From the sequence record OP999020.1: a stretch of DNA of 23,609 nt. One strand, given 5' to 3'. Below, one piece after another: positions 1 through 19,059 of the stretch. Positions within the stretch are counted from its first letter, which is position 1. Every line of letters starts with the position of its first letter. A program made the translations under genes and the position numbers. The notes below the pieces were generated by a model, which searched no databases, had not been told where the DNA came from, and saw only the letters and a program-made list of their open reading frames with translations.

Positions 1-1
1 T

Positions 2-190
2 GGCCTTTATCCTTGCCTAAAAAGAGGCACAATAGTAAAGAAGCAAGATATCCTAGATGCGATGAAGAATATAAAATTAAAATCTGTCATAAACAAAACG
101 GAGTTGTTTGAGGAGTTGTTTGAGACATTTAAGGACCACGGTTACCTAAAGGAGATCGATAATGATAACGTTAAAATTCTACTCTTATAA
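2..190 (+). CDS. 3' end of a hypothetical protein truncated by the window edge; possibly ends in a winged-helix-like segment
   Basis: Frame 2 is open from base 2 to TAA at 188-190 (GLYPCLKRGTIVKKQDILDAMKNIKLKSVINKTELFEELFETFKDHGYLKEIDNDNVKILLL*) and is followed by a T-tract. Not in the ORF track. The fold guess is pattern-based only. Confidence 0.55.
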   Translation, partial: GLYPCLKRGTIVKKQDILDAMKNIKLKSVINKTELFEELFETFKDHGYLKEIDNDNVKILLL

Positions 191-198
191 ATTTTTCA

Positions 199-243
199 GT
201 AAAATTACAGAATTGTCATGTCAGTTCTACAAATTTGTGGAAA
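199..243 (+). repeat. Copy A of the dispersed intergenic element
   Basis: Ungapped 36/45 match to 17497-17541, including the GAATTGTCATG(T/A)CA(G/A)TTCT dyad core. Confidence 0.7.
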
Positions 244-371
244 CCCCTTTTTCCCCTTATGTTTTTGTGACTATCGTGTTAAATTAACATGTGATTTTAC
301 GTGTTTGGCTATGGATCTCATGAGAGAAAGTTTTATAAGTTTAAATAACTACAGTGATAATTGGTGGGAAA

Positions 372-1178
372 ATGTTTGAGATCGAATCCGAATCCGAAAA
401 AACACAACTTCATCTGAAGGCAAAAGAAGAAACCTTAGAAGATCTAGTATACTATGTGTTAGGGAACAGTCTTATATTATACAAGAAAGGCCTATTGCCT
501 TTTGCATTTTACAATTACAAAATAGATAGAATAAAGAAAGATATGTCAAAGATTAATAAAACAACATATGCGATAACCTTAAGCGTTAGACTATATAACA
601 CTGCCAACAAAGAAAAACTAAAAATAATGTTCACTTTCATTTTTGAGATAAATGCTGATCATAATAGTGAGTATATGTTTGACCCAGAGGAGGCTAAAGA
701 TAGGCTATTGATAATAATAATGTCTGGCTTATCCCCACTAATTTATGCCTTCAATGACTTTATTGAAAGAGCTGGCTTTACCTACGATCCTTTAGCTTAT
801 GTTGAGCATAATAAAGAAGTTAAGGCGAATATGATAAATATAGTGATGAAGAAAGTAAAAAGATACACTGTACCTATAGGCGATGAGGCCTTTATCGAGG
901 CAGATGTGATTTATGCAGATACGAAAATGGACTTAGTTGCTGCTAGTATGTTAGGAAGCAATAATTGGTACCTTACAGAGAAGAAAGTTAACTTAGCTGA
1001 TTATAATAATGATATAGAAGCTGTGTTAAAGAGTTATGCAGAAGAATTGAGCAAAACATTTCAAGACCAGATACGAAATGGAGAATCTAAAATTTTCGCT
1101 ATAAAATATAACGATGAATTGACCATGAGCCTTGTGGCACCAGCTTCTAAAAAGGAAAACTACCTATTCGCTACCTAG
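372..1178 (+). CDS. Hypothetical protein, about 268 aa
   Basis: ORF track gives 354..1178 from GTG. ATG at 372 is preferred because it follows an SD-like GGTGG (363-367) and a BRE/TATA-like GAAAGTTTTATAA (326-338). No family recognised. Confidence 0.8.
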   Translation: MFEIESESEKTQLHLKAKEETLEDLVYYVLGNSLILYKKGLLPFAFYNYKIDRIKKDMSKINKTTYAITLSVRLYNTANKEKLKIMFTFIFEINADHNSEYMFDPEEAKDRLLIIIMSGLSPLIYAFNDFIERAGFTYDPLAYVEHNKEVKANMINIVMKKVKRYTVPIGDEAFIEADVIYADTKMDLVAASMLGSNNWYLTEKKVNLADYNNDIEAVLKSYAEELSKTFQDQIRNGESKIFAIKYNDELTMSLVAPASKKENYLFAT

Positions 1179-1188
1179 GTGGCCAACC

Positions 1189-2172
1189 TTGCCTTACTTA
1201 ACATTTAGAATCCCACGCGGTCTAGTTGAAACGATGAAAAGAGTACAAGAGAAGCGCCAAGAAACTCAAGACCTAATAGTCACTAGGGCCTTGGAGAAAT
1301 TCTTTGAGAGGCATAAAAATGAAAGCTTCAGGGCGGTGCTACGGGAAATAAAGAAGTTAGAACAAAAGCTGACTGCTAATTCACCACCGCTTGAGGATAT
1401 AATTACTGTTTCACTGTCAGATGATATGGTAAAGATGCTAAACGAGTACATGGAAAAGAATAAAGTGAGCTCTCGAGATTTAGTTGTTTTTGCAGCACTT
1501 ACCGATTATCTTTACGATGTTACTATGAGAAAGGATGAGAAGGTGGAAATTGATTTTTCCATCAGTAATGAGCTATATAGAAAGCTTACCAATATAGTAC
1601 AATTTACCCCAAAGAATATTAAGGACATCATACCTGACGTAATAAAGTGGTTTTTAGACCATTATGGGCACCTTGATCTTGCTTATATAATTAAGGATAA
1701 GATAGAAAATAAGGATGAATTGTATAAGGGAAATATAGCCGTTAGGTCAATGATACCATGGGACCTTAAGAGACGTTTCCTTAACTACGTTCATAAGAAC
1801 GGATTTTCGATGTCTACGGTTTTTCGCGTTGCATTAATTCTATACTTAAAAAAGGTTGAAGCGGGCGACATAAAAATTGATGAGACTAAGGATGAAGAGA
1901 AAAATCAAGACGCGCCAAAAGAAAAACATATAAACGAAATTGTTGAATCACTTGATAAATTACAAAAGGAGTTGAAAGAACTAGAGGGGGAAAAAGAAAG
2001 AAATGATTCACATGCGCGCCTCATCAATACTAAACTAGAGGTCATAAAGTTAGGCATTAAAAGCGGTGCCGATGCCGATGAGATTATGAATGTAGTAAAT
2101 GCAATCGAAAAGATGAAGGATGAGGCAAAGGAGAAGAAGGAGAAGCTAACAAAAGATAATAATGCATCATAA
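1189..2172 (+). CDS. Putative transcription regulator with four tandem RHH (CopG/Arc-like) domains and a C-terminal coiled coil
   Basis: Four beta-alpha-alpha segments: YLTFRIPRGLVETMKRV..LIVTRALEKFF, ITVSLSDDMVKMLNEY..LVVFAALTDYL, IDFSISNELYRKLTNI..IIPDVIKWFL and VRSMIPWDLKRRFLNY..TVFRVALILYL. TTG at 1189 lies 6 nt after AGGTGG (1177-1182) and avoids the overlap with the upstream gene implied by the track's start at 1132. Confidence 0.72.
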   Translation: MPYLTFRIPRGLVETMKRVQEKRQETQDLIVTRALEKFFERHKNESFRAVLREIKKLEQKLTANSPPLEDIITVSLSDDMVKMLNEYMEKNKVSSRDLVVFAALTDYLYDVTMRKDEKVEIDFSISNELYRKLTNIVQFTPKNIKDIIPDVIKWFLDHYGHLDLAYIIKDKIENKDELYKGNIAVRSMIPWDLKRRFLNYVHKNGFSMSTVFRVALILYLKKVEAGDIKIDETKDEEKNQDAPKEKHINEIVESLDKLQKELKELEGEKERNDSHARLINTKLEVIKLGIKSGADADEIMNVVNAIEKMKDEAKEKKEKLTKDNNAS

Positions 2173-2184
2173 TAGCTTATTGTA

Positions 2185-3591
2185 ATGAATCCGATTTTAA
2201 ATTTCCTGAAGAACGCTAACATTCCTATTGTTTCCATTATATCATCATTCATCTTCTTTGTTGTCGCTGCAAAGCTTTCAACCCCAGCATTTTTCGGGCA
2301 AGTAGCTATAATTCAGTTATTTTCCACTGCGGTCTCATTGCTTGAACTAGTCAATACTTCTATTGTCTCGCGAGAAATCGTATATCAACTTGCCAAAAAC
2401 GAGCTAGACAAGAAGTTCATAAGCACTGCTATTATTACATCATTTTTAATCTCGCCGCTTTTTCTCTCCTTACTGGCCTTTTCTAATTATCTCAGATTTT
2501 TAATTCCTTACTTGATTCTCTTTTTACTGTACCACTACTTAACTGCCATTCTAATAGGCTTGAATAGGTTTACTGAAAATACGATTTCGTGGAGTGTATT
2601 TTTCATGATACGCTGGGGCGTATCAGTTGTTGCAGTAATTTTTAACAGTATTTTACTCTTAATCACGATCTGGACTCTCGCAGCGTTAATATGCGATATC
2701 TATTCGCTTCTAGTAGTGATAAAGAGTGTTTCTGGTTTATCTTTCGCTTTTGATAAGTCTCTTTTTAAGAGATTAGTTAAAGAAAGCTATGCACTGAACC
2801 TGAAGAGCATTGCTAGCTTTTTCAGTTCGCAGGGTGATAGGCTAATAGTGATCTCGCTTCTTGGTACTTATTTTTTGGCCATTTATCAGTTCGCTGCGTT
2901 ATTGGCTGATGTGCCGGGCATGATTTTAAGGGCTATTAACGATTCGGTTCTCGTTTCCTCTTCTTATTTCAAGGCGAAAGGTGCTGATGAGTTACGAATG
3001 AGTAGGTTAACGTTTAAAGCGGTGGTAATTCTAACGTTTATAACTGCGATAGTGTTTTTGGCACTTGTGCGTTTTTTAGTACCAGTATTTTTCCCTGCCT
3101 ATAAGGCCGGCTTAATTTCACTCTCCATCCTTTCGCTTTCTTTTATTTTTTCAATACCATTTCTTGTTCTCACACAATTCATCATTTCGTACAAGAGAGA
3201 TCTTAAACTATTCACTTTAATTTCTCTTATTGATGCTGTATTGATCTTATTAACATCAATCTTCTTAGTTCCAAGGTTAGGAATCTTAGGCGCTGCTATC
3301 TCACAGTTGGCTGTTGCGGTGGTCAATAATGTTCTGAATCTTCTTTATTCATTACACGTGAAGGTGTTTATGATTGGAAAGAAGGAGTTATTGCTGATGA
3401 TCATGATGCCAGCCATCTTTGCTTATGAGCTGTTTTTTGACAGTGTTTATTTTAGCATTTTGCTATTGTTTGTGCTGTTTGGCTTGTTCAAGCTAACCAA
3501 AATCTTCGATAGCCATGAGAAGGATGTAATTACCTATTTTATTGAGAAAAAACTTAGTTTTACGAAAAGGATTTTTGAAGCGATTTTTTGA
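2185..3591 (+). CDS. Polysaccharide biosynthesis protein / oligosaccharide flippase (Wzx/RfbX-like, MOP superfamily)
   Basis: 468 aa with about 12-14 hydrophobic segments and typical Wzx-type motifs (AKLSTPAFFGQV, QGDRLIVISLLGTYFLAIYQFA, LVPRLGILGAAISQL). Confidence 0.85.
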   Translation: MNPILNFLKNANIPIVSIISSFIFFVVAAKLSTPAFFGQVAIIQLFSTAVSLLELVNTSIVSREIVYQLAKNELDKKFISTAIITSFLISPLFLSLLAFSNYLRFLIPYLILFLLYHYLTAILIGLNRFTENTISWSVFFMIRWGVSVVAVIFNSILLLITIWTLAALICDIYSLLVVIKSVSGLSFAFDKSLFKRLVKESYALNLKSIASFFSSQGDRLIVISLLGTYFLAIYQFAALLADVPGMILRAINDSVLVSSSYFKAKGADELRMSRLTFKAVVILTFITAIVFLALVRFLVPVFFPAYKAGLISLSILSLSFIFSIPFLVLTQFIISYKRDLKLFTLISLIDAVLILLTSIFLVPRLGILGAAISQLAVAVVNNVLNLLYSLHVKVFMIGKKELLLMIMMPAIFAYELFFDSVYFSILLLFVLFGLFKLTKIFDSHEKDVITYFIEKKLSFTKRIFEAIF

Positions 3592-3623
3592 TTAAAGTTT
3601 ATTTCTCCCAAAGGAAGGAAATT

Positions 3624-3705
3624 TTGTTATCATACGGCCCCAAGATAACAGAAGATCCGGTTACGAAGTTATCTTAGTTTCGTTTTTAGTGAAGAAAGAT
3701 AACAA
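3624..3705. promoter_or_regulatory. Four alternating GATAAC/GTTATC boxes, possible operator
   Basis: GTTATC 3626-3631, AAGATAAC 3642-3649, GTTATCTT 3668-3675 and AAGATAAC 3696-3703, upstream of the promoter of the 3787 gene. Confidence 0.3.
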
Positions 3706-3786
3706 AGAACGAATAAGCAAAAATCCCCTTCGTTTAGAATATTTTAAGCACAATAATTTTTTAATCGCTTTTTGCAATTTTATCAT

Positions 3787-4101
3787 ATGAGTGGGCACAC
3801 ACTAGAACTTATACTAAAACCGATTGATTTTCGTAAAGTTACAACAAAAGAAGAAAAAGAAGCCATAAAGAAATATGTTAATAGAAATTATAGTATAAAA
3901 GAAGTTAATAGAAATGGGCAAGAAATAGAAATAAGAATCATCTACGATAAACTACCAGATGCTGTTTTAATTAAGGATAGCTTAATAAATGATTGTGTTC
4001 TAAATTACAAGATTGGCAGACTCATAATTCTAAAGCGTAACATGTATATTAAGCTTGTTCCTGGGAAGCTTATTGAACGTAAACCAGTATCTGTTTCATG
4101 A
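3787..4101 (+). CDS. Hypothetical protein, 104 aa
   Basis: ORF track gives 3772..4101 from TTG. ATG 3787 lies 23 nt after a TTTTTTA TATA-like box (3757-3763), the same geometry as at 17581 and 19149. Confidence 0.75.
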   Translation: MSGHTLELILKPIDFRKVTTKEEKEAIKKYVNRNYSIKEVNRNGQEIEIRIIYDKLPDAVLIKDSLINDCVLNYKIGRLIILKRNMYIKLVPGKLIERKPVSVS

Positions 4102-4150
4102 TCGATAATTTTATAAGTATAAATATGTAGTAGATTTATAGGGGTAAAAA

Positions 4151-4453
4151 ATGTTGAAGACAATCCCGTTTAAAATCAATTATAAAATGCTCTTCCTAGA
4201 TCTAGATGACGAAACTGATGATATGTATGCTTATCTTACAGACCCAAATTTAAAATTAGAAAAGCGCGTCAAATTTCGAGAATTCGTAGAATTCAAAAAG
4301 TTCATTGATGAGCTAAGCATAGATTATGTCATAAAACCAGTAGCTGGCTATGTTGATGAGAAAAACAATGAACCTCAAGTAAAATTTTTGATAGTTGTAT
4401 TATTTAAAAAGCCTGTAGCTTCCGATACGCAATACGCTACACCAGTGAATTAA
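4151..4453 (+). CDS. Hypothetical protein, 100 aa
   Basis: ATG start preceded by GGGGT; co-directional in a tight cluster; charged globular composition. Confidence 0.78.
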   Translation: MLKTIPFKINYKMLFLDLDDETDDMYAYLTDPNLKLEKRVKFREFVEFKKFIDELSIDYVIKPVAGYVDEKNNEPQVKFLIVVLFKKPVASDTQYATPVN

Positions 4454-4470
4454 CTGGGGGGTTAAAAAAT

Positions 4471-5247
4471 ATGGCAGAAGAGGCTGAGAAATTAAAACTT
4501 CTAGTTGGGCATTTCAAGGATTTAGCATTAGCAAAAGAATTCTTAATGCAAATAACACCACAAAAGCTTGGAAAAGTTAAGTATTCATACGCAGTGGCCA
4601 TTTCGCAAAACAGTGGCCTAGAGTTCATTCCAACTGAAGTTAAAACAAATCCAATCGTCATAGAAGACACGCAGCGTAAATATGTGAAAAAACTTGTTGT
4701 AGAAAAAACAACAGTCCTTTCGCAAAGCATGCTACTAGTACCAAAAAATCTAAACAACCGTACAGTGGTTAGCCTTTATACGCATGCTGAAACTTATGGC
4801 GATATCTTATTTGGATTGCGTAGGATAATTTGGAAAATACAAGATGATATAAGAAAAACAAAAGCTGGGGAAAAGCCTAACATTTTACTCGACTTAAAAG
4901 TATTGCAGACAAATACATTAAGGCTACTGTTCAACGTGTGTATGGAGTTTATGCTTAAGCGAGGGAATATAGTTACGTTTGATTATGATAAAGGGTCAGT
5001 TCTTCTTTACAGACTAGCAGACCAAAGAGAAGTGTTAACGTTTGCCAACTACAGTGAGATAATATATACGCATGACCTTGGTTTTGATTTCCCTTCACAG
5101 AAGCTAGTAGAGATAGAGTCACATTTAAAGGCAAAGGAAATAGTTCAGCTCGTGAACACAGTAATGAAATTAGTGCATTGGGTGTTTGAATTTACTTTTG
5201 ATTATCTAAATGGCGGGAAATACATTTTAATGGGGGAAAAGCCATGA
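4471..5247 (+). CDS. Hypothetical protein, 258 aa
   Basis: ATG start preceded by GGGGGT. Its stop overlaps the next ATG (ATGA, 5244-5247), which suggests translational coupling. Confidence 0.82.
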
Positions 5248-5762
5248 TTTTCAGTGATAGAGATTTAAAATATTACCTGGAAAAGGGATGGATAAAGATT
5301 GAGCCGTTAAGAGAAGACACTATTAGGGAAAATGGGGTAGATTTAAGGATTGGTAACGAGATTGCTAGATTCAAGAAAAATAGGATTTTTGATCCTGATA
5401 AAGATTCCATAGATGATTTTATAGAGAAAGAGGTAGGTAATGAGTTTATAATAAATCCCCATGAGCATGCATTATTAACTACAGAAGAATATATAAGATT
5501 GCCTAATGATGTAATGGCATTCGTAAATCTTAGATCAACATTTGCTAGGTTAGGTCTTTTCATTCCTCCAACTATCGTAGATGCAGGATTTGAAGGACAA
5601 TTAACTATAGAGTTAGTAGGATCAGAATTCCCAATAAAACTAAAATATGGAATGAGATTTATCCACCTAATCTTCGCAAAAACATTAACACCAGTTGAAA
5701 AGCCATATAATGGAAAATATCAGAAACAAAGAGGAGTAACGTTAGCTAAGCTCTTAAGTTGA
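5244..5762 (+). CDS. dut: dUTPase / dCTP deaminase family protein (trimeric dUTPase fold)
   Basis: Motifs [40 protein letters not shown] and [12 protein letters not shown]. From memory it is very close to the Sulfolobales dcd-annotated and rudivirus SIRV dUTPase sequences. dUTPase versus deaminase activity cannot be settled from sequence alone. Confidence 0.92.
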
Positions 5763-5775
5763 CGTTTTTCTGTAG

Positions 5776-5884
5776 ATTTGGAGAATTCTTACTAGTAAAA
5801 CATATTTTGGTAAATCTGGTAAATTATAATGACAGTTTACCAAATTTGGAGAATTCTGACTTTTTGTTCATATTTCGGTAAATC
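5776..5884 (+). repeat. Copy B of the dispersed intergenic element, containing a 41-bp imperfect direct repeat
   Basis: ATTTGGAGAATTCT-N-CATATTT(T/C)GGTAAATC at 5776-5816 and 5844-5884. Bases 5784-5853 match 17471-17540 at 58/70 without gaps. Confidence 0.85.
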
Positions 5885-5931
5885 AAGGTTATTGTATCTT
5901 TTTAACCTATATTTTATGAATAATATTTAGT

Positions 5932-8900: not shown

Positions 8901-11900
8901 ATTACAAAGCCTAGGAATAAATATTGATCCATCACAAATCCAGCAGACTATAGATAATATCAACCAAAGCATAAATGAAATACAGGCAATACAAGGTTCT
9001 TCTCAGCAATTACAAAACATATTGAAGCAAATACAAAATCAATTACAAACGCCTCAAAGTGCAGAAACATTAACATTAAACTTAATGAATCTATCGAGTC
9101 AAGGCTTGCAAATAATCAGTAATATAATAGCAACATATCAAAAATATGGGCAAAGCCCAGACCAAAGCATTTTATCGCTGCAAAAGAAACTACAGAAGAT
9201 TTATGATAATGCACAGAGCGAATACCAGTTATTAACTGCGCAACAATCTTCTCAATCATTTACACAATCAGCAGGCGATATTGCTACTGGAAACATAGGT
9301 GGGGCTATTATAAGTGGTCTAGCTGGTATTGGTGAAGCTGTCTTATCTGGTTTAGCAAATATAGGCGCCAATTTCGTAAGCGTTGTTGGCACAGCAATAA
9401 ACGATGGTTTAAACGATCTAAGCAACTTCATAACTCATGCCATTCCTGGCATAGCTGGGCAAATAATCGCTGGAATTGTAATAGGTGCATTATTTACAAT
9501 CGTACAATTCATACCTGGAGTTGATGTAGCAGTTGATACAGCAATTGGAGCTACTATCATGGCTGCAACAATAGGTGATGCAATACAACAATACTATTTA
9601 TCCGGAATTTCTAATCCGCTAACAATAGCAACAGATATAGGAAAATCGTTTATAACACCAGAAGGATTAGCTGCGCTGTTTGCCGGTGTAGGTTTTTCAA
9701 TCGGATTGCCACGAGTTGTTGATAATGTAGGCGATTTATTCAAATCAACTGATGATGTAAAAGTATCTGGAGTAGTAAAAAGCCTAGATAATGCGAAAAT
9801 TGACTTAGACAAAATACAAGCAAGGATGGGTGACTTATTAAATAAGCTAAAATTAGACAAGACTAAAATTGATGTGACAAAAGTTGCCGAAAACCTAAGA
9901 GATTTAAATGATCTCCTTAGTATAAAGGGAGTATTAGACGGTATTAAAGACTATCTTGACAAACTAACAGAACGCTTGAATGGAATTTTAAAAATAGATG
10001 CAAAAGTAAAAGTTGGACCAGAAGGTGCAGAAGTTTATACGATAAAATTAGGACCATTTGGTGAAGAAGTTGCTAGTTTAACTGCAACCATACAAAAAAT
10101 AGAACAGGCTGCTGAAATTACATTGGAAAAACTAAAATCAAGCCTCAAGATAACTGACGAAGGAGTAGAAATAAAAGGTGGTAGCAATAATACAATAACG
10201 ATAGCTAATAAAGAAGCACTATATACTCAGACAGCAGGCAATCTATCCACAAAAACTGAAATTCCTTCTGAAGGAAAAATAGGCTTACCAGAATTTGAAA
10301 CAGTCAAGATAAATACTGGGGAGTTACATGGTACTACGTTTTCAGACCTAGTAGAACCAAGCAAAGCAAATCTGACTGAAATTAATTTAGAACAAGCAGT
10401 TAATAAATTTTCGCAAATCCCACCAGAGATTAGTAGATTAGAGGCACAATTTGACAATAATGAAACCTTCGCATTGGATATCAGTAAAGAGTTTGCAGAT
10501 TATTTGCACGCAAAATATGATGCCTTAAGATCTCAAATTGTAAATATATCAAAACAAATAGCAAAAGAGCACTACGATAACCCAGATTTTGCAGCAGCAG
10601 AGGAAAAAATAGCTCAGCTGGGTTTTAGAAACCAAATAGATTCCGCTGCTAACAAGATAGAGACATTGAATCAAAAATTAATTGAACTGAGAAAGATAGG
10701 TAATTTATTAAAAGCTGTCAAGGAGAAAACAACGATAGATATCGAACCATTATTGAAAGATTATGTTGATGGTAAGATAGATAATATATATGAGCTAGCA
10801 AATATGATAAATGAAAAACTTTATGACTATTATAAACCACAAATTGATTCTTTAGAAAATAATATTTTAAGCACTTTACAGAAGAAGGGCGCAACACCAG
10901 ACCAAATTGCACAAGTAAAGAGTGAAATTGATAATTTAGTGTTAAATCAAATTGATGAGTTTATTAATCCAAAAGAATCAACAGATACAACACAAGTACT
11001 TGATAATGTTAGTAATCTTGTTGATCAGTTAAACAAAATTGAAGCGTTTGCAAAGAATGCATCTAATGCAAATGATATGATTAACATAATAGAGGACCGC
11101 CTTGGTGGAGGTTCCGGCACACAATATGAAATACAAGCAAATACTAAAACGGAGAATCAACCATTAGGTTCAAATAACATTAGCCAACCAACTACTCCTC
11201 AAAATACTCCTAGCACCACTGGTCAAACTCCTGGTACTACTGCCTCTAGTGGTATTGAGAGTCAGACTGGTAGTGGTCAAATTGCAGTACAAATACCGAA
11301 AGAGGCAGTAAAAAGTGCAGAAAGTAATGTGGTAAACTTATCGCTAAGGTATAGCCTTTCTGACATTATCAATACCGCTAGGCAAACACTTGGAGAAGAC
11401 TTTGATAGAGAATTGTACGCATTTTCGCAGTTGTTTGGACAAGATTCTATAAACCAGGCAATTTTAGATGCTGTGAATAAGTCCCCAACACCAGATCTAG
11501 ACTCCATAGCAAGAACATTAGGCGATGTTATAGAGAGTAAAGTTGATGAGGTTTTACGGACTTCCCCAGATAAAGCAGTTGCAACTATTGAAGATATGCT
11601 AAAAATCAATAATGATTTAGTAAAAAGTAAGCTCACAACAGATTTACTTGACTTTATAAAGAATAATCCAAAAGCAACATTTAATGATTTATTGACATTT
11701 ACAGAAAAAGATCTACCAAAAATTGTTAATGATGTTAAGGACACATTAACAAATTCGGTTTTAGATCAATTGAGTAAAGGATTTGGTAATTTGACTAACT
11801 TAATTGGGAAAGATTCACTGAAGACATTCCTTGAAAATGAGATAAAGAATGGTGTATTTGATGTAAATAAGTTGTTAAATGATGCTAAAGCGTTTGCAGA

Positions 11901-12972
11901 TTCCAGGCTGACAGAATTATTGAAAACTAATCCGGAGCAGGTACTCTCAACGATACTAGATTCTGCAAAGATTGGGAATAAGCTGATTAGAGATAAACTG
12001 TTGACAGATACATTAGACTTTGTAAAACGTTTTGGCGGTAATGTGACATTACAAGATATTGCGGAATTTATAGCAAAGGACGCTTCTGATCTAAAAACGC
12101 AACTTACAAGTACATTAAAGAGTGGTAACTTAAAAGGACTGGCAAATACGTTCCCTGCTTTGAAAAACGTTTTGGAGGAACTAAATACGGACCCAGTAAG
12201 AGGACTGAAACAGTACTTTAGTTTAGTAGACCCAACAGTTGCTGAGAGCTTAAATAGGATAACATCAGATAATGCACTAGATATTCTTGACGCACTAAAG
12301 AGTGATAATTTAACTAAGATCGCACAAATACTTGACTTATCAGTAGACGAACTAGAAAGGCCAGAAGTTAAACTATCAATAATCAGTGAGATATTAGATG
12401 ACTTAATGAAAAAACTAAAGGTGAAAGAAATAACTGTCGAAGAATTTGAAAGTGCGGTAGAAAGTTTGAAAGAAACGATAAATGAAATATTGCCAGAATA
12501 TAGAAATCTGCTAGGAGATTACGCTGAGAAGCTACAAGAACAAGTACAAGAAGTTGAGGATTATGTAAAAGAAAAAAGATTGTCTAAAGTAGTTGAACTT
12601 TATGATGTATTGGTTCCATCTACCGCTGAATTACCAGTGATCTTGTCAATAGCAAGCAATAGTGACATTAATTATTTATTAGACTATGTAGAACAATTAG
12701 CCTCTCAAGAACAAACACCACAAGTTAGCCAAGAAACGCCACAACAAGGAGTACAAGAAGAACAGAGTACAACAGTTTTATCAACACCAGCTCAACCAGA
12801 ATCACCTATACTGGAAGAACCTTTAGCCCCACCACCCACTGAACCAAATCAACAAGAGCAACCAGAATACCCAATGCCAACGGGACCTAATGCACCAGCA
12901 TTGCCAAACAGAAATACTAGATCTGTCAGTGGTCAAACGCAACAACAAATACTATACTTCCCCATTTCATGA
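5932..12972 (+). CDS. Giant 2346-aa helical/coiled-coil protein, probable virion structural protein of bicaudaviruses
   Basis: Uninterrupted 7-kb ORF with a Q/N/S-rich, charge-poor N-half, a hydrophobic Gly/Ala-rich middle (about aa 1114-1263), a K/E/D/L-rich C-half and a Pro-rich tail. Comparably huge proteins are known from STSV1 and ATV; homology is inferred, not aligned. Confidence 0.9.
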   Translation: MSVTQPTTEQLNAYAQYTSLQQQLSNLLNQIQQIPNPPTPPQPPTSNDPASLSNYYSSLAEYYQNIQSYSQEYGKTITQNLQILQQSMQIINQMEGLLKILGQTDSNLQQVADQISQNINYYQQLQNATQTNYSSYAAFFNNLANAYSEINQYQQLPSLPQAPSGSVSLSGAAQYYSSLANWLTQNSSTVQQNISALQGAIQALQAALNNVPPGYNASQLQQQLQQWQQSLAQLQSLTNLNPQQLQNTATAYSLWAQGITALNKSDYQDAVNDFNQALQAVGLSPPSSPTQKAPSSQWAALFYLSGLANALLNAQNIQNQYQQQLNQLGQQISSQQGGNISPQLLQTISQFYTTLSQELAQVKPYFEQASQYGANVGVQINADGYNTASKLAADLAKLASDMANALQQLSNSNTQNPNPANQASQILMGDQGLVNEINSLASSLPSSFSSLVTDAQSLVSGYDELTKSSTNAYTFYSGVNQIQQYLNQQDYQDAYNAAVNLAKSLGISVSINDLTQQSYQPPSNDQETETVYYLLLLSKWGLTYQSITNQYQQQINSLASSISSSSSMQQTFSTYAQIFKLMYEMYNTLQQITPAGNAAFSYFGETTFPQNYFATAAELMKKASDIASQIASDLANGNYDDIEKMQLNFSELSQLQSMNNSLTQNMTSSIQQNISNFAIAVANLQYNIAFTNSINKALQQVNNQQNQTTVNQNSIAANRFFRGRFGNAYEASSNSSAQTYQQLSQTYAQVAQQITTVTQQQASGSVQIPGVGTVNVRVPNDLINSAGQTAQKMKLLSQAYNALAQASQNSNDPQTALQNYQTAYNNFTQAGVSQDKLSNLQSVISFYQYLVNNQGTLQSIQSQLQEIGNLTPQVNNNSVKLGTAALVASAATMPLSQMRSTVEQATGLDQIKQQIDNYYDNFPSLPQNLQQQVNNMHTIADTTVDLYTNNLVARAYISVTQLPNVSADQQIQSLQNAKQALQNAKQDTQTLQSLGINIDPSQIQQTIDNINQSINEIQAIQGSSQQLQNILKQIQNQLQTPQSAETLTLNLMNLSSQGLQIISNIIATYQKYGQSPDQSILSLQKKLQKIYDNAQSEYQLLTAQQSSQSFTQSAGDIATGNIGGAIISGLAGIGEAVLSGLANIGANFVSVVGTAINDGLNDLSNFITHAIPGIAGQIIAGIVIGALFTIVQFIPGVDVAVDTAIGATIMAATIGDAIQQYYLSGISNPLTIATDIGKSFITPEGLAALFAGVGFSIGLPRVVDNVGDLFKSTDDVKVSGVVKSLDNAKIDLDKIQARMGDLLNKLKLDKTKIDVTKVAENLRDLNDLLSIKGVLDGIKDYLDKLTERLNGILKIDAKVKVGPEGAEVYTIKLGPFGEEVASLTATIQKIEQAAEITLEKLKSSLKITDEGVEIKGGSNNTITIANKEALYTQTAGNLSTKTEIPSEGKIGLPEFETVKINTGELHGTTFSDLVEPSKANLTEINLEQAVNKFSQIPPEISRLEAQFDNNETFALDISKEFADYLHAKYDALRSQIVNISKQIAKEHYDNPDFAAAEEKIAQLGFRNQIDSAANKIETLNQKLIELRKIGNLLKAVKEKTTIDIEPLLKDYVDGKIDNIYELANMINEKLYDYYKPQIDSLENNILSTLQKKGATPDQIAQVKSEIDNLVLNQIDEFINPKESTDTTQVLDNVSNLVDQLNKIEAFAKNASNANDMINIIEDRLGGGSGTQYEIQANTKTENQPLGSNNISQPTTPQNTPSTTGQTPGTTASSGIESQTGSGQIAVQIPKEAVKSAESNVVNLSLRYSLSDIINTARQTLGEDFDRELYAFSQLFGQDSINQAILDAVNKSPTPDLDSIARTLGDVIESKVDEVLRTSPDKAVATIEDMLKINNDLVKSKLTTDLLDFIKNNPKATFNDLLTFTEKDLPKIVNDVKDTLTNSVLDQLSKGFGNLTNLIGKDSLKTFLENEIKNGVFDVNKLLNDAKAFADSRLTELLKTNPEQVLSTILDSAKIGNKLIRDKLLTDTLDFVKRFGGNVTLQDIAEFIAKDASDLKTQLTSTLKSGNLKGLANTFPALKNVLEELNTDPVRGLKQYFSLVDPTVAESLNRITSDNALDILDALKSDNLTKIAQILDLSVDELERPEVKLSIISEILDDLMKKLKVKEITVEEFESAVESLKETINEILPEYRNLLGDYAEKLQEQVQEVEDYVKEKRLSKVVELYDVLVPSTAELPVILSIASNSDINYLLDYVEQLASQEQTPQVSQETPQQGVQEEQSTTVLSTPAQPESPILEEPLAPPPTEPNQQEQPEYPMPTGPNAPALPNRNTRSVSGQTQQQILYFPIS
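8849..8890 (+). repeat. Perfect 21-bp tandem duplication (one heptad) within the giant ORF
   Basis: CATTACAAAATGCGAAACAAG x2, encoding LQNAKQA-LQNAKQD. Confidence 0.9.
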
Positions 12973-13956
12973 AGATACAAAAATTTTTTCTAATTCTTTT
13001 ATTAATTCTTTTTGAGCTTCTTCTCTAACTCTCTTTCTTATTCCCCACTCAACTCGTAATTCAACTTCTACTTTCTTTAACAAACCAGTCTTCACATAGT
13101 AATCATACACTATCATCCATTTTTTCCTAGCCTTATCACGTAGTTCGAATAAATATGCAATAATATCCCTCATATTAATCTGAGGAGGTTGCCTATCTAT
13201 CTCATCCTTATAGAGTTCTATAGACTTCTCAAGCTCATTAGAAAAGATCCACCTCATCATATAATAATACTTACGAATAGAAAATTCCCTTGCAAATGCT
13301 TTTTCGTTAATCTTATCACCATCAATTGGTACATAACCTCCTGCTAAAAGTTCTTTAGTATGTACTTGCCATAGAAACTTAATTCTTAACTCAGCAATTA
13401 GACCACTCCTTCCATATGAACCACATAAACCGTTTTCAGAAACTTCATATAAATAACTATCAATTTTCTTCTTAAGGTCGTCAATTGCTGGCATTATTTC
13501 ATCTACTGCTTTCTCTAAACGTTCTGCTTTTTCTTGCTCGCCTTTCTCTTTAAGAGCTCCAAGATGTATGTAAAAGACAAAATCCTTCATAAATAGCCCA
13601 TAGGGAAGGCGTGTAAGAATAATTTTTCTAGATAGATCTTCATAAAAATATGACCAGATTTTTGCGCAGTACTTAGAGGCACCATCAAGTACTTTTTTTA
13701 TTTCTCCAAGTACTACATGAGGATCATCGTTTTTGTGTGCTTCAAGATACTCCTTTACGCTTTTATATCCTTGTGGAATGTATAAATACTTATCAAACTC
13801 TTTTTCATCCATTATTTGAACGTTTAGTCTTTCTTCAACCTTTTCTATTTCTCTCGTTATCCAGTAATCATTCAAGCTTTTATAGTACTCGATTATCTTT
13901 TTCGCTTCTGTTATAATCTCGTTTAGCCTTTCAACATACTCTGAATAACTTCTCAT
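12967..13956 (-). CDS. Hypothetical highly charged helical protein, 329 aa
   Basis: Long ORF with an ATG start 24 nt after a TTTTTTTA box (13981-13988, minus strand). No family recognised. Confidence 0.82.
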   Translation of the reverse strand: MRSYSEYVERLNEIITEAKKIIEYYKSLNDYWITREIEKVEERLNVQIMDEKEFDKYLYIPQGYKSVKEYLEAHKNDDPHVVLGEIKKVLDGASKYCAKIWSYFYEDLSRKIILTRLPYGLFMKDFVFYIHLGALKEKGEQEKAERLEKAVDEIMPAIDDLKKKIDSYLYEVSENGLCGSYGRSGLIAELRIKFLWQVHTKELLAGGYVPIDGDKINEKAFAREFSIRKYYYMMRWIFSNELEKSIELYKDEIDRQPPQINMRDIIAYLFELRDKARKKWMIVYDYYVKTGLLKKVEVELRVEWGIRKRVREEAQKELIKELEKIFVSS

Positions 13957-13998
13957 CTAAAAATATAGAGAAAAGGAAGGTAAAAAAATTTTTATCTT

Positions 13999-14499
13999 TT
14001 ATACGCCTTGCGGGATGTAACCTAATGCCATTAGTAGGTATAGAATTTCTGACACTGAAAATACACTTATTAAGACGTCATCAAATACCATAATAGTTGG
14101 CGCTACGATTAAACCTTGAATCATTAGTGGAATCCAATGGGCAAAGAAGAAAATCGCATTAGTGTAGATATACGTAACATATGCTACTATAAACACAGTT
14201 TGCGCGTAGGTTTGTGTTGAGGAGGAAATGTTTGATAGTACTGATATTCCAGATATTGCTCCTAGTGCTGCTACACCGTTTGCTATAGCCCCAAAAAACG
14301 GATTATTTGTTAACCCAGATAGGAATGAGATAATGCTTATCCCAGAAATGGAAGATAGTAATTGAGAAGCTTGCCCAGAAAAATAGTTCGGTGCTGCCGC
14401 TATAAATGAATCAATTAAGATGTTCGCTACAGCAGCGCCTATTACTAGCCCGAATGCTGTGTTAAATGTTGCTTGTAAGAAATTTGTTAGGAATCCCGT
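13999..14499 (-). CDS. Multi-pass membrane protein, about 166 aa, apparently starting at ACG
   Basis: The 65-aa ORF-track call (13999..14196) is the tail of a frame open up to 14505. It reads (M)GFLTNFLQATFNTAFGLVIGAAVANILIDSFIAAAPNYFSGQASQLLSSISGISIISFLSGLTNNPFFGAIANGVAALGAISGISVLSNISSSTQTYAQTVFIVAY... An SD-like GGTGA lies 6 nt before the ACG at 14499-14497. Confidence 0.7.
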   Translation of the reverse strand, partial: TGFLTNFLQATFNTAFGLVIGAAVANILIDSFIAAAPNYFSGQASQLLSSISGISIISFLSGLTNNPFFGAIANGVAALGAISGISVLSNISSSTQTYAQTVFIVAYVTYIYTNAIFFFAHWIPLMIQGLIVAPTIMVFDDVLISVFSVSEILYLLMALGYIPQGV

Positions 14500-14539
14500 A
14501 TTCTCTCACCTTGTATATAATTATTCTATTTCACTCACC

Positions 14540-17212
14540 TTATAAGAGTTGTGATTGTGCTCTTTGTGTTGCTGAGCTAGAAGAAAGTACTGCTGGTGCT
14601 ACTGATACTGCTGCATCACCTACTACGTTTATTACTGCATTTATCGCATTAACTGCATTGGCATATGTTGCGTTTTGTGTGTAATTTTGACCAGTTATCG
14701 TGTTTAATGCGTTGATGAGATTTAGATAATATTTTGCTTGTTCTTTATACTGTATTGCAGAATTAGTATCTCCATTTTTTAAAGCCTCATATGCCTTTAC
14801 AGCATAATAATATAAAGATTCGAGTAATCCATTCATCTTCATTGTAAATGTGCTTCCTTGCTCTTGTGATAAAGCTATGATGTAAGGGGCATATTGTGGT
14901 GCTGCAGCTATTGCATCTGCATAATCATTATTCATTAAGTAATTTGCGACTGTTTGATTATATTCTATTTGTACTGCTTGTGATGAGTTGTTTGGCGAGA
15001 ATGCGGATACGATGTTATTAATGTAAGTGCTTAATCCATTAAGGTATGGATTATTAGTATTAGCTAATGCCGAAAGTTGGTTAACAATGAACTGTGGATT
15101 TTGCCCTTGTGCAAATGCCGTATCAAAGTCTTGTAACAAATTCTGAACCTGATTGATTGTATTTATTGCCTGATTGATCTCGGCTGTATTATTAGTATCT
15201 GATTTTAACTGATTCAATATCTGAAGGGCCTCATTTAGATTACCGCTTTGTAGTGCGTTTTGGAGATTTGTAGTTAGATTCTGCGCGTTTGTACCTACTT
15301 GCTGTTGTGCGGTTTGTAATAATTGTGCTACAGTATTTGCCTCATTATTTAGATAATTAGCCAAATACGAAGTGATTGGATTACTGCCCACTTGATTTGC
15401 GATTTGTTGTAATTGATTTGCAATTTGCTGTAATGTGTTAACATCTGATGAAGTGTATTGCCCTTTATTTTGTTCTTGCTGTATTGTACTAACGGCATTA
15501 TTGAACTGCTGCTGTATACTGCTCAATATCTGAATTGCTTGAGAGATTGTACTTGCATCTTGTGTATCGCCTATTTGATTAGCAATTTGCTCACCACTCT
15601 GTAAAGCGGAAATTGCTGCATTTATATTACCGTTCTGTAAATCGTTTTGTACTTGACTAATTAAGCTTTGGAATTGTTGTTGCATTTGCTGTAATTGTTT
15701 CTGTTGTTGCTGCTGTAAGTAGTTTTGTATGTTAGTTTGTACTTGTTGCGCAGTACTCGCCAAATTGCTTATATAGCTAGATAAGGAAGAAGTGATTTGA
15801 TTACTGCCTATACTGTTGTTTATGTTGTTTAGTGTATTAATAGCATTTTGAATGGTCTGTAGATCACTTTGTGTATAACTACTCTTATTCTGTTCTTGTT
15901 GTATTGTACTGGCAACACTGCTTAATTGCTGCTGTATATTGTTTAATATCTGAATTGCTTGTGAGATTGTGTTTGCAGCCTGCGTATAACCAATTTGATT
16001 TGCGAGTTGGTCACCACTCTGCAAGGCAGAAAGAGCGTTACTTATGTTACCACTCTGTAGGTTGTTCTCAGCTTGAGAAACATAGTTTTGTACTTCTTGC
16101 TGTAAGTAGTTTTGTATGTTAGTTTGTACTTGTTGCGCAGTACTCGCCAAATTGCTTATATAGCTAGATAAGTAAGAGGTAATAGAATTGTTGCCTATAC
16201 TGTTATTTATACTGTTTAGTGCACTAATAGCATTTTGAATAGCTTGCAAATCGCTAGGTGTATAACTACTCTTATTCTGTTCTTGCTGTATTGTACTGAT
16301 AGCATTATTGAGCTGTTGTTGAATGTTATCTAGTATTTGCGTTGCCTGTGAGATTGTGTTTGCATCTTGTGTATCGCCTATTTGATTAGCAATTTGCTCA
16401 CCACTCTGTAAGGCAGAAAGAGCACCACTTATGTTACCGCTTTGTAAATCATTTTCAGCTTGAGAAATGTAGTTCTGTACTTGCTGTGTATTTGGTCCAG
16501 AACTGCCTCCACCACCGCCTGAACCACCAGAACCACCGCTTGAACCACCACCGCTTCCAGAGCCACCACCACCACCAGAGCTTGGCGGACTGGAACTACC
16601 CCCGCCACCGCCTGAACCACCACCGCCGGAGTTTGGATTAGAACTTCCACCACCGCCTCCAGAACCAGGGCCCGAGCTGTTTGGTGAGCTATTAGGACTG
16701 CTTGATTGGTTATTAAGGTAGTTTTGTATTTGTTGTTGAACTGACTGTGCTTGTTGATATAGACTGTTTAAATAATTTGCAAGAGGACCAGCATATGGAT
16801 TATTATTGTTTGCTTCTGCGTCTAAGCCATTAACAACATTCTCCAAATTATTTACAATTGTGTTAATTGTATTCAAATCGTTTTGTGTATATGAACTTTG
16901 TTGTTGTAATTGAAGTATTGTGTTTCTGTATTGATTATAGTTATATGCAGTAAGAGCATTTAGGACTGACTGCGCATTATAAGCATCGCCTTGATTACCA
17001 GTTTGCTTATCATATTGTATTATTCCATTTAGAATATCTTGCGCATCAGCAGGAGAAGCACCAGCACTAACAACTTGCCCATTTTGAACTGTTTGTGTAC
17101 ATTCTGCAGGACCATATCCATTACTGTATAGCGGAGGGGGATTAATATAAAATACACTTTGGTAAGCCATTAACCAACCTTGATTTGTGCATGGTTGCGA
17201 ATTTGACGACAT
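14540..17212 (-). CDS. 890-aa Q/N/S-rich helical-repeat protein with a Gly/Ser linker, probable virion (tail/filament) protein
   Basis: ATG start with GAGGAG upstream. Contains a Gly/Ser/Pro low-complexity linker (about 16490-16700), three ~129-aa repeats plus degenerate partial copies, and very few charged residues. Confidence 0.88.
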   Translation of the reverse strand: MSSNSQPCTNQGWLMAYQSVFYINPPPLYSNGYGPAECTQTVQNGQVVSAGASPADAQDILNGIIQYDKQTGNQGDAYNAQSVLNALTAYNYNQYRNTILQLQQQSSYTQNDLNTINTIVNNLENVVNGLDAEANNNNPYAGPLANYLNSLYQQAQSVQQQIQNYLNNQSSSPNSSPNSSGPGSGGGGGSSNPNSGGGGSGGGGGSSSPPSSGGGGGSGSGGGSSGGSGGSGGGGGSSGPNTQQVQNYISQAENDLQSGNISGALSALQSGEQIANQIGDTQDANTISQATQILDNIQQQLNNAISTIQQEQNKSSYTPSDLQAIQNAISALNSINNSIGNNSITSYLSSYISNLASTAQQVQTNIQNYLQQEVQNYVSQAENNLQSGNISNALSALQSGDQLANQIGYTQAANTISQAIQILNNIQQQLSSVASTIQQEQNKSSYTQSDLQTIQNAINTLNNINNSIGSNQITSSLSSYISNLASTAQQVQTNIQNYLQQQQQKQLQQMQQQFQSLISQVQNDLQNGNINAAISALQSGEQIANQIGDTQDASTISQAIQILSSIQQQFNNAVSTIQQEQNKGQYTSSDVNTLQQIANQLQQIANQVGSNPITSYLANYLNNEANTVAQLLQTAQQQVGTNAQNLTTNLQNALQSGNLNEALQILNQLKSDTNNTAEINQAINTINQVQNLLQDFDTAFAQGQNPQFIVNQLSALANTNNPYLNGLSTYINNIVSAFSPNNSSQAVQIEYNQTVANYLMNNDYADAIAAAPQYAPYIIALSQEQGSTFTMKMNGLLESLYYYAVKAYEALKNGDTNSAIQYKEQAKYYLNLINALNTITGQNYTQNATYANAVNAINAVINVVGDAAVSVAPAVLSSSSATQRAQSQLL
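15290..16483 (-). repeat. Three tandem intragenic repeats with a 387-bp (129-aa) unit
   Basis: 75-bp identity between 15711-15785 and 16098-16172 (offset 387). 52-bp identity between 15553-15604 and 16360-16411 (offset 807 = 2x387+33). Outer boundaries are approximate. Confidence 0.9.
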
Positions 17213-17271
17213 TTCACTCTCCTCTCTCTAAAAATAATAAAACAAAATTAAAAAGAGTCACTCAGAAGGCT

Positions 17272-17318
17272 TTTTGGCAAATTTACCAAAACTGTCTGAG
17301 TGTTCATAATTCTCCAGT
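17272..17318 (-). repeat. Copy D of the dispersed element, inverted and facing the 890-aa gene
   Basis: The minus strand reads CTGGAGAAT-N-TTTTGGTAAAT with box spacing 28 (29 in copy B). It includes the near-palindrome TTTTGGCAAATTTACCAAAA (17272-17291). Confidence 0.6.
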
Positions 17319-17470
17319 TTTGTAGAAGGTTTTTCCTCATGTAGCCTTGCTTTCTAATTTCGAACTTTTGCTATATACAGGAACTTCGAACTTATGATGT
17401 AAAAAATTAGGCATTAAGTTGTTTCACAAGTTTGAAAAAAATACAGAACGTTTTTTCGATAAATTCACCA

Positions 17471-17540
17471 AATTCTTACTTGTTGAACATATTTTGGTAA
17501 ATCTGCTGAATTGTCATGACAATTCTACCAATTTGGAGAA
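17471..17540 (+). repeat. Copy C of the dispersed element, with a perfect 18-bp palindrome
   Basis: 58/70 identity to 5784-5853; GAATTGTCATGACAATTC at 17508-17525. Confidence 0.85.
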
Positions 17541-17580
17541 AAAGCTAGTCTTTTTTAATTCATTGTGTTTACTTAAACCT

Positions 17581-18081
17581 ATGAGTGAGATAACTCCATC
17601 AGACCCACTGCAACGTATCTCATCTAATTTTATAATAATATTGAATAGTTTACCGCCTGCATATCAATCAGAAACAATACAATACATTAAGACAACTCTA
17701 CTCAACAACGGCCTACAGCAAATTGTGCCACAATCTTTTAGTCAATTAGTTCCCTCTACTACTCCAGCAGCTATTCTTTCATCTATCCAAAAAGAAATAA
17801 CTACTGGACAAGGTGAGAAAATAAAAATACAGCAGTTACCAACATTAGTAGAGCAAACGCAAAACCTAATTGAGCAACTGCCGTCAGTAATTTCAAGAAC
17901 TCAACTGAGTGTTGAAGAAACGCCTGCAGTGCTTGCAGCAATTATTGCTGTACCATATATTAAACAAAATATTTTACCAAAGGTTATTCAAACATCATCT
18001 AGTTCAATAAAGCAACTGCCTAGTGTGCTTGGTAATACTGACAGTGAAGTTTTAATATCGCCATTAGTAGTAAACCAATAA
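17581..18081 (+). CDS. Hypothetical protein, 166 aa (MSEITPSDPLQ...), with recurring QLP(S/T)(V/L) motifs
   Basis: The track's start at 17419 runs through the non-coding repeat element. ATG 17581 lies 23 nt after TTTTTTA (17551-17557). Confidence 0.78.
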   Translation: MSEITPSDPLQRISSNFIIILNSLPPAYQSETIQYIKTTLLNNGLQQIVPQSFSQLVPSTTPAAILSSIQKEITTGQGEKIKIQQLPTLVEQTQNLIEQLPSVISRTQLSVEETPAVLAAIIAVPYIKQNILPKVIQTSSSSIKQLPSVLGNTDSEVLISPLVVNQ

Positions 18082-18627: not shown

Positions 18628-19059
18628 ATGGCAAGAGAGGAACCATACAAGGGCGACTATGTAGGAGGAGTAGCTAAGGTATTACAAGGCTATTTTGCAA
18701 ACTACTATGGATACCCCGACGTTTCATTAAAGTTAGCTGGTGAAGAAGCAAATCTTAGTAGAACCGGGCATGCAAATGCAAAAGAAATAGTACATGAAAT
18801 GATAAAAACAATTAGAGAAGCTTCAAAACCAATAAGAAGAGGAAAAGGCTTCAAAGATGCATGGGTATATTTCAGTCAAGTTCCAGATAATGCACCACCT
18901 AACAGCACGGCATTACCACCAAATATTGCTCAGGCTGTACAACAGAGACTACAGGCATTATACTCACAGTTACTATCTACAAGAGCGGCTGCTAGTGAGG
19001 CAGCAAAAGCCCCAGCTTTCTCTCCTTCTCAAAGCTTAACTATGCCAGCTAATATGTAA
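18628..19059 (+). CDS. Bicaudavirus major virion protein, ATV p131 / STSV major structural protein family, 143 aa
   Basis: The N-terminus [42 protein letters not shown] matches the p131-family signature as I recall it (KGDY.GG..K...[13 protein letters not shown]). Confidence 0.88.

Follow-up and report, generated by a model that had tools for sequence, protein, structure and literature searches.

The stretch of DNA considered here (23,609 nucleotides of sequence record OP999020.1, hereafter the window) contains a palindromic element of about 48 bp that recurs in its intergenic regions. The window belongs to STSV3, one of the STSV viruses. These large, tailed, spindle-shaped viruses infect the hot-spring archaeon Sulfolobus and are provisionally placed in Bicaudaviridae. 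The window matches STSV2 at 88% identity across 98% of its length and STSV1 at 85% across 97%, and its gene order is that of STSV1 from the end of open reading frame (ORF) 24 through ORF45. STSV2 grows on S. islandicus, STSV1 and STSV3 on S. tengchongensis. To our knowledge, how the large tailed spindle viruses (STSV, SMV, ATV) regulate their genes has hardly been explored, and the sole cis-element proposed earlier for STSV covers early anti-defence genes.

Three well-preserved copies of the element (A, B and D) and a degenerate one (C) lie in the window. Copy A precedes an operon made up of a 268-aa ORF, the gene of a protein with four predicted ribbon-helix-helix (RHH) units (the 4xRHH protein) and a polysaccharide-synthesis gene. 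Copy B is located upstream of a 2346-aa gene, and copies C and D lie between a leftward 890-aa gene and a rightward 166-aa gene. The features at these loci are:

195-242, + strand: copy A, a composite palindrome of 48 bp centred between 218 and 219 (profile match 191-243, 55.8 bits, E = 1e-15)
331-338, + strand: TATA box TTTTATAA of the copy A operon, at the same position as the TATA box and ribosome-binding site annotated for the paralogous leader of STSV1 ORF17
1189-2172, + strand: gene of the candidate regulator (4xRHH protein, homologue of STSV1 ORF26), four tandem beta-alpha-alpha units and a C-terminal helical region
5776-5805, + strand: STSV3-specific upstream box ATTTGGAGAA and spacer, a 39-column gap in the three-way orthologue alignment
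5806-5853, + strand: copy B, centre between 5829 and 5830 (profile match 5802-5853, 50 bits)
5854-5884, + strand: spacer and box TTTCGGTAAATC on the 3' side of copy B (repeat family D6), kept in STSV1 and STSV2
5899-5905, + strand: TATA box TTTTTAA of the 2346-aa gene (ATG at 5932), in line with a TATA box annotated at the corresponding STSV1 position
17230-17242, - strand: probable TATA region of the 890-aa gene (ATG at 17212), at the position of the annotated TATA box of STSV1 ORF37
17271-17327, + strand: copy C, degenerate (21.4 bits on the + strand, 14.6 bits on the - strand)
17461-17492, + strand: upstream box TAAATTCACCAAATT and spacer of copy D (repeat families D5 and D6), at the junction of a 182-bp indel relative to STSV1
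17493-17540, + strand: copy D, centre between 17516 and 17517 (59.2 bits, E = 8e-17)
17551-17558, + strand: TATA box TTTTTTAA of the 166-aa gene; STSV1 annotates a TATA box at the same place

Based on an alignment of 26 copies, the element is a composite palindrome of about 48 bp with arms of 24 nt, whose consensus reads TTCnGTAAATTTACAGAATTGTCA up to the centre and TGACAATTCTGTAAATTTGGAGAA beyond it. The core dyad, GAATTGTCA followed by TGACAATTC, is flanked on either side by a box centred on AAATTT and by a TTC/GAA end, and the 5' edge carries a TTTT(T)C tract that hardly varies. Across 22 copies from four genomes, positions 1, 7 and 8 from the centre never vary on either arm and positions 5 and 16-18 scarcely do, and the copy between STSV1 ORF66 and ORF67 is a flawless palindrome over all 48 bp. 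Alternatively, the unit can be viewed as three adjoining small palindromes about 15.5 bp apart, reading GGTAAATTTACC, GAATTGTCATGACAATTC and TTCTCCAGTTTTGGAGAA in some copies.

An original prediction, made from the letters of the window, had described an element of 45-70 bp built from TTTGG(T/A)(A/G)AAT boxes around a dyad. Its alignments were recomputed exactly, with 58/70 identical positions without gaps between 5784-5853 and 17471-17540 and 36/45 between 199-243 and 17497-17541. The perfect 18-bp palindrome at 17508-17525 (GAATTGTCATGACAATTC) was likewise found, as were the box spacings of 29 and 39 bp in copy B (boxes at 5777, 5806 and 5845) and of 39 bp also in copy D. The boxes themselves are the outer portions of the 48-bp unit, and the proposed size gives way to this larger composite palindrome. 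As to the four related copies that had been counted, A, B and D lie far beyond chance (50-59 bits, E values between 1e-13 and 1e-16), while copy C is weak and, contrary to its description as inverted, aligns better in the same orientation as copy D.

Among the individual copies, the dyad of copy A, GAATTGTCATGTCAGTTC, has two mismatches to the perfect form, and in copy B the central dyad is weakened to AAATTATAATGACAGTTT between outer arms TGGTAAA and TTTACCA. Copy C retains the boxes GGCAAATTTACC on the left (17276-17287) and TTCTCCAGTTTTGTAGAA on the right, but an 8-nt insertion breaks its central dyad, which, together with the low score, marks this copy as degenerate.

The abundance of both motifs in the window exceeds that of shuffled sequence. 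The dyad with up to three mismatches occurs twice (0.03 expected) and the TTTGGWRAAT box ten times (0.54 expected), and none of 100 dinucleotide-preserving shuffles reached as high a number in either case. An independent repeat finder run on the window returned the same repeat families (D4, D5 and D6).

To place the element in a wider context, a sequence-only profile was built from a first alignment of copies A, B and D with their STSV1 and STSV2 orthologues and searched against the complete genomes of STSV1 and STSV2 together with another STSV3 contig. STSV1 contains nine strong sites, located upstream of ORF17, ORF25, ORF34, ORF38, ORF52 and ORF64, in the divergent ORF66/67 and ORF71/72 regions, and between the convergent ORF46 and ORF47. 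All of them (9/9) are intergenic in a genome of which 16.1% is intergenic (p = 7e-8). The sites fill 9/36 gaps of at least 90 bp and span 18.6-73.2 kb, with none in the first 18 kb; in this early block (STSV1 1-18,000), the only profile match is a partial one of 10.9 bits at 185-217. Corresponding site sets of comparable number are present in STSV2 (ahead of gp12, gp15, gp24-26, gp31, gp35, gp49, gp62 and gp73) and STSV3, contigs of STSV4 match too, and a 45-bit copy is carried by the metagenomic contig L022, the fifth STSV-like genome after STSV1, STSV2, STSV3 and STSV4. Orthologous sites are conserved in all five. Copy A corresponds to the sites upstream of STSV1 ORF25 and STSV2 gp24, copy B to those upstream of ORF34 and gp31, and copy D to those upstream of ORF38 and gp35, whereas copy C is present in STSV2 and absent from STSV1.

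The conservation that the original prediction had proposed to look for therefore holds across STSV-type genomes, but it does not extend to other bicaudaviruses: the profile found no matches in SMV1 and ATV (112 kb, E values up to 10). Among 185,579 species representatives, the exact 18-bp dyad turned up in eight bacterial contigs, a count close to chance expectation, and in no Sulfolobales genome. In IMG/VR, it occurs in STSV1 and in three unrelated contigs, which match the dyad alone and not the profile. No feature is annotated at the sites in the STSV1, STSV2 or STSV3 records; the STSV1 GenBank record does annotate TATA boxes, ribosome-binding sites, repeat regions and stem-loops elsewhere. 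Neither the core sequence nor a palindromic intergenic motif was found in the STSV literature that was searched, a set that did not include the STSV1 genome and STSV2 transcriptome papers.

The sites show a consistent relationship to promoters. The dyad centre lies 38-118 bp upstream of an annotated or homologous TATA box and overlaps none (38, 40, 58, 58, 69, 74, 74, 77, 115, 117 and 118 bp), and these eleven distances show no convincing 10.5-bp periodicity that would indicate helical phasing. Within the window, the distance from the centre to the TATA box is 116 bp for copy A, 72 bp for copy B and 38 bp for copy D. The corresponding distances to the ATG are about 153, 102 and 64 bp, in agreement with the earlier statement that this distance is not fixed. 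About 45 bp separate the palindromic left box of copy C (GGCAAATTTACC) from what is probably the TATA region of the 890-aa gene. In asymmetric copies, the TTTGGAGAA arm points towards the nearest gene.

Four types of sites can be distinguished. A-type sites (copy A; upstream of STSV1 ORF17 and ORF25; STSV2 gp12, gp15 and gp24) are followed by a conserved leader of about 180 bp and then by a TATA box and a Shine-Dalgarno sequence, while B-type sites lie about 73 bp upstream of the TATA box. At D-type sites (such as copy D and the sites upstream of STSV1 ORF38 and ORF64), the arm TTTGGAGAAAAGC(C/T)TA adjoins the TATA box, and in a fourth type the element is followed by AAAGTTTATTAA. The genes concerned are more varied than the virion genes originally thought to lie mostly behind the element: the coat-protein promoter has no dyad copy, and other copies stand ahead of operons with RHH genes, of a gene that follows thyX, and of genes for membrane or glycosylation functions.

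The location of the sites also corrects the STSV3 annotation, in which two ORFs cross sites and two start codons are probably misplaced. The real start of the 166-aa gene is the ATG at 17581, with the orthologous coding sequences in STSV1 and STSV2 both being 501 nt long and beginning at the equivalent ATG; the record starts this gene (its ORF17) at TTG 17419 and thereby runs through copy D and the TATA box, which is probably wrong. The annotated ORF3 (53 aa, 218-379) begins inside the copy A dyad and is probably spurious. The operon behind copy A has its Shine-Dalgarno sequence GGTGG at 363-367 and its first ATG at 372. The 4xRHH gene really starts at TTG 1189, 7 nt after a Shine-Dalgarno sequence GGTGG (1178-1182) that overlaps the stop codon of the 268-aa ORF (1176-1178), which places it in the operon behind copy A. 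Its annotated start, TTG 1132, overlaps the preceding ORF and is probably wrong, as the homologues begin with MPYLTF, corresponding to TTG 1189.

A palindrome may act as a folded hairpin or as a double-stranded site, and the alignment speaks for the latter. In the palindromic register, 78.0% of the cells pair, compared to 30-48% with the partner columns slid. Column shuffles of the alignment, however, still reach 76.6% and there is no compensatory covariation, showing that the symmetry stems from a common half-site consensus and not from compensatory change. The single-strand folding z-scores vary from copy to copy (-0.1 for A, -3.2 for B, -3.0 for D and -11.6 for the perfect STSV1 copy). A scan for terminators revealed no terminator-like sites, and no Rfam family reached the gathering threshold in the whole window. 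A hairpin-type element was rejected on the pairing values and the spread of the z-scores, and the pattern suits a symmetric protein that reads double-stranded DNA, from which we infer that the element is bound by such a protein.

Regarding the potential binder, the 4xRHH protein is the sole protein within the window with a hint of DNA binding. Its Pfam RHH_1 match is weak and sub-threshold, and a PDB sequence search with it gave nothing significant. AlphaFold2 predicts four strand-helix-helix units followed by long helices (mean pLDDT 72, and 85-91 over the first two units). Foldseek lists F-plasmid TraY chains at the top (target-normalised TM-scores 0.70-0.74, probability 1.0), followed by VirC2, DndE and NikR, with weak E-values of 0.04-0.4. 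The four RHH units suggested by the original prediction are thus borne out by structure prediction and fold search; TraY and VirC2 are bacterial single-chain tandem-RHH proteins. Only four homologues were detected among 5.8 billion proteins, all of them close and STSV-like. This lineage-restricted protein is the most likely candidate binder. The copy upstream of its own operon would fit autoregulation by the predicted binder, and the known homologues fit a phyletic range shared by element and protein; in L022, which has no ORF25 homologue, a copy is located directly upstream of the 4xRHH gene. The p131-like protein that had also been proposed as a binder is the coat protein (18628-19059), a member of the RIP/P131 family (Pfam PF22238, E = 1e-34) to which the RNA-polymerase inhibitor of ATV belongs, and nothing ties it to the sites.

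Some copies have been rearranged. STSV1 is devoid of 182 bp between two AAATT(T/C)ACCAAA boxes at the copy D locus, and the extra 39-bp segment of copy B is missing from the orthologous STSV1 and STSV2 loci. The spacer of this STSV3 segment is identical to the spacer of STSV2 copy D, which points to recombination between copies, and part of the B/D similarity in STSV3 is recent. At the STSV2 ORF66/67 locus, the centre of the palindrome is cleanly deleted (~30 bp) beside an insertion of IS605 orfB. Here (STSV2 L007, 28900-28950) the outer arms alone remain, reading TTCTGTAAATT joined to TACAGAA, where the STSV1 counterpart is the perfect 48-bp palindrome; a second copy of the right arm is found across the IS605 orfB insertion (30470-30500). 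Taken together, these rearrangements look like ordinary repeat or palindrome instability.

Considering these results, the element is probably a cis-regulatory operator for a putative virus-encoded, symmetric and sequence-specific regulator. Among the functions listed by the original prediction, a viral regulon operator is favoured by sites that are conserved, intergenic, symmetric and upstream of TATA boxes, while an iteron, a packaging or nucleoid site, or a recombination site is not; a nucleoid or packaging site would leave the strict promoter placement unexplained. About ten promoter regions per genome are marked, all outside the early block, which suggests one co-regulated set of transcription units. 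In the window, this set would comprise the copy A operon, the 2346-aa gene, the 166-aa gene and possibly the 890-aa gene.

In the mechanism we favour, a site would serve as a high-affinity nucleation point for an RHH regulator 38-118 bp upstream of the B recognition element (BRE) and TATA box, and the bound regulator would then control access of TBP and TFB to the promoter. By the precedent of the viral repressor SvtR, repression by spreading combined with autoregulation would be the likeliest sign; activation is the alternative and would be favoured by the location upstream of the TATA box and the fixed junction of D-type sites with the BRE/TATA. Within one arm, the inner and the outer box might each be read by one of two unlike RHH modules of a single 4xRHH chain, so that a dimer would cover the palindrome. 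A more far-reaching version, which we consider unlikely, is that a 4xRHH dimer reads the three-part palindrome with an occupancy set by genome copy number and acts as the master switch that separates the early anti-defence block from the remaining genome, while the ORF20-24 paralogues read the variable outer boxes. If true, this would represent a new archaeal viral regulator architecture and the first defined temporal regulon in large tailed spindle viruses.

Several observations weigh against an operator read by the 4xRHH protein. Besides the 4xRHH protein, these viruses encode at least seven RHH- or AbrB-like proteins that represent alternative candidate binders, among them STSV1 ORF55 (RHH_1, 1.7e-7), ORF62 (MazE/AbrB-like, 6e-9) and the multi-RHH family ORF20-24. 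In STSV2, gp25 is the 4xRHH protein, gp53 is of the ORF55 type, gp60 of the ORF62 type, and gp17-23 are multi-RHH proteins. The distance to the TATA box varies threefold, which is unusual for a simple activator, and the spacing of the sub-palindromes by about 15.5 bp would place them on alternating helix faces, a misfit with same-face RHH binding. One STSV2 copy has lost its centre yet the neighbouring promoter survives, indicating that at least this site is dispensable. Furthermore, 5/9 STSV1 sites come directly after a stop codon and a T-tract, as a termination role would have it, and the search of host genomes covered the exact 18-mer only, which leaves room for a host factor. As for the ORF20-24 paralogues (PHA02938 superfamily; L022 2209-5734; the end of an ORF at 62-190 in the window), they show RHH_1 and RHH_3 matches and lie just upstream of copy A, forming an expanded multi-RHH cluster beside the 4xRHH gene in STSV genomes.

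The stop codons and T-tracts raise the question of a boundary element or terminator, in which the palindrome and T-tract would end or insulate the upstream unit, by an RNA or DNA hairpin or by a protein roadblock, without regulating the downstream promoter. Copies A and B, like the five STSV1 sites, begin within a few bases of the upstream stop codon, the T-tract at the 5' edge hardly varies, and one STSV1 site is located between the convergent ORF46 and ORF47. Nevertheless, copy D and three of the STSV1 sites are found in divergent promoter regions with nothing to terminate, and the majority of co-directional gene junctions are without a copy. The T-tract precedes the AT-rich stems, the hairpin of copy A is not significant, and to the missing covariation and the empty terminator scan comes the convergent site itself, which is followed by the promoter-like AAAGTTTATTAA; a terminator thus appears quite unlikely. 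Similarly low is the probability we give to a Sulfolobus transcription factor or chromatin protein that would read the palindrome and couple viral genes to the state of the host. Host factors such as Sta1 do act on viral promoters (PMC5569661), and the viral binder is a predicted one. However, no Sulfolobales genome contained the exact dyad, SMV1 and ATV, viruses of related hosts, are without a copy, and the site is unchanged between STSV2 grown on S. islandicus and STSV1 and STSV3 grown on S. tengchongensis.

The rearrangements, in turn, would suit a selfish or structural repeat, that is, remnants of a promoter-module duplication or a small palindromic mobile element without sequence-specific function, serving as recombination substrates. 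Indel junctions fall in the boxes (the 182-bp indel, the 39-bp segment and the STSV2 centre deletion by IS605 orfB), and within classes the copies share long flanks, such as the ~180-bp leader of the A-type or the TTTGGAGAAAAGCCTA-TATA module of the D-type. Between classes, though, only the 48-bp element is common, and core positions +/-1, 5, 7, 8 and 16-18 are (nearly) invariant across the 22 copies. The sites are strictly intergenic and upstream of promoters, and host genomes contain no exact-dyad copies, which makes this explanation very improbable. A palindrome resembling a miniature inverted-repeat transposable element or a repetitive extragenic palindrome was rejected, as the orthologous positions are stable in four to five genomes and no target-site duplications are visible. 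Least credible, and scarcely to be expected, is a role as replication origin iterons, a parS-like partition site or a packaging signal. While a long palindrome repeated around a circular genome brings such functions to mind, and they were among the options first proposed, the sites are unclustered, spread over 55 kb and tied to promoters; the region with the annotated repeats and stem-loops of the putative STSV1 origin (1-1411) has only the 10.9-bit partial match mentioned above, and no ParB-like gene was seen in the window.

Besides the dyad element, a second, different repeat, TTCGAACTTTTGCTATATACAGGAACTTCGAAC, was observed in this part of the genome:

17355-17395, + strand: imperfect inverted repeat TTCGAACTTTTGCTATATACAGGAACTTCGAAC around TATATA

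It occurs in one to three copies per genome and in either orientation, each about 15-175 bp from a dyad copy. Other copies are located in STSV1 (L004 18489-18523; L005 ~9440-9480 and ~22970-23000), STSV2 (L006 ~39385-39420) and L022 (~530-565), and the repeat could be a small-RNA promoter or another protein site. The neighbouring 890-aa ORF on the - strand encodes a repetitive, fibre-like protein, with three to four tandem repeats of ~390-420 nt (63-82% identical) at 15224-16455 and a run of Gly/Ser/Pro-rich repeats of 21-51 nt at 16500-16674. In STSV1, a GC-rich stretch of ~135 nt (L005 14655-14790, - strand) between ORF53 and ORF52 comes right after a dyad copy and the promoter-like AAAGTTTATTAA. 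Its fold is moderately above shuffles (z = -2.25), Rfam and tRNA searches of this stretch gave no match, and STSV2 has IS605 orfB in its place, so that it may be a small RNA or an insertion-sequence remnant.

Comparing the candidate regulator with its best structural matches, TraY and VirC2 have one tandem RHH pair where the 4xRHH protein has two. Both bind multi-part sites and are relaxosome accessory proteins at oriT, not viral transcription factors.

For the STSV viruses, a shared regulatory sequence has been reported that defines a set of early and anti-defence genes (Nat Commun 2024), comprising STSV1 ORF1, 2, 4, 6, 9, 11 and 72 and STSV2 gp01-04, 06, 08, 09 and 73 (PMC11065993). The dyad sites avoid this block, which includes all members but ORF72/gp73, and share with the gene set only the ORF71/72 intergenic region. 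The gene lists meet only at ORF72, and the dyad sites show no association with the predicted anti-defence genes. The sets are nearly complementary, pointing to one regulon in the early block and another in the remaining genome. The dyad element defines a second set of about ten promoters, for which a few candidate regulators can be named. Since STSV2 grows on the genetically tractable Sulfolobus islandicus REY15A, the operator idea is directly testable.

A further RHH site, the aCcr1-box, is a 9-bp palindrome whose factor is also encoded by bicaudaviruses (PMC9976878), although the aCcr1 clade has no STSV2 member (PMC9976892). It lies in the interval from the TATA box to the start codon, whereas the STSV sites are all upstream of the TATA box; the position 38-118 bp upstream and the differing sequence rule out that the element is an aCcr1-box.

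The closest described systems are the operators of SvtR and AvtR. SvtR of SIRV1 is an RHH repressor that binds its own promoter as well as a high-affinity site that precedes a structural gene's BRE/TATA by about 80 nt, from which it is thought to spread towards the promoter (PMC5569661). As in STSV, imperfect inverted repeats occur at several viral promoter regions; the promoter of SvtR itself is among its targets (PMC5569661). In contrast, SvtR has about four sites of ~22 bp and STSV about ten of 48 bp, and SvtR is a 6.6-kDa dimer with a single RHH motif per chain, while binding to the STSV element is predicted. AvtR of AFV6, a tandem-RHH monomer, has eight conserved sites in the genome and represses its own gene (PMC5569661). 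It resembles the STSV candidate in having more than one RHH motif per chain, with two motifs in AvtR and four plus a helical tail in the candidate; no sequence similarity between the two proteins is detectable. Neither the SvtR consensus ATnnTTCAAnAnnnnnAAAATG nor the AvtR consensus ATnnTnnTAnnACnTT occurs in the window, so that the STSV element has a different specificity and is not the same operator. If the 4xRHH protein is the binder, the range of RHH architectures would be widened from one or two to four motifs per chain. Overall, a dispersed operator of an archaeal virus is of a known kind, while the element itself, its size and its possible 4xRHH reader are new.

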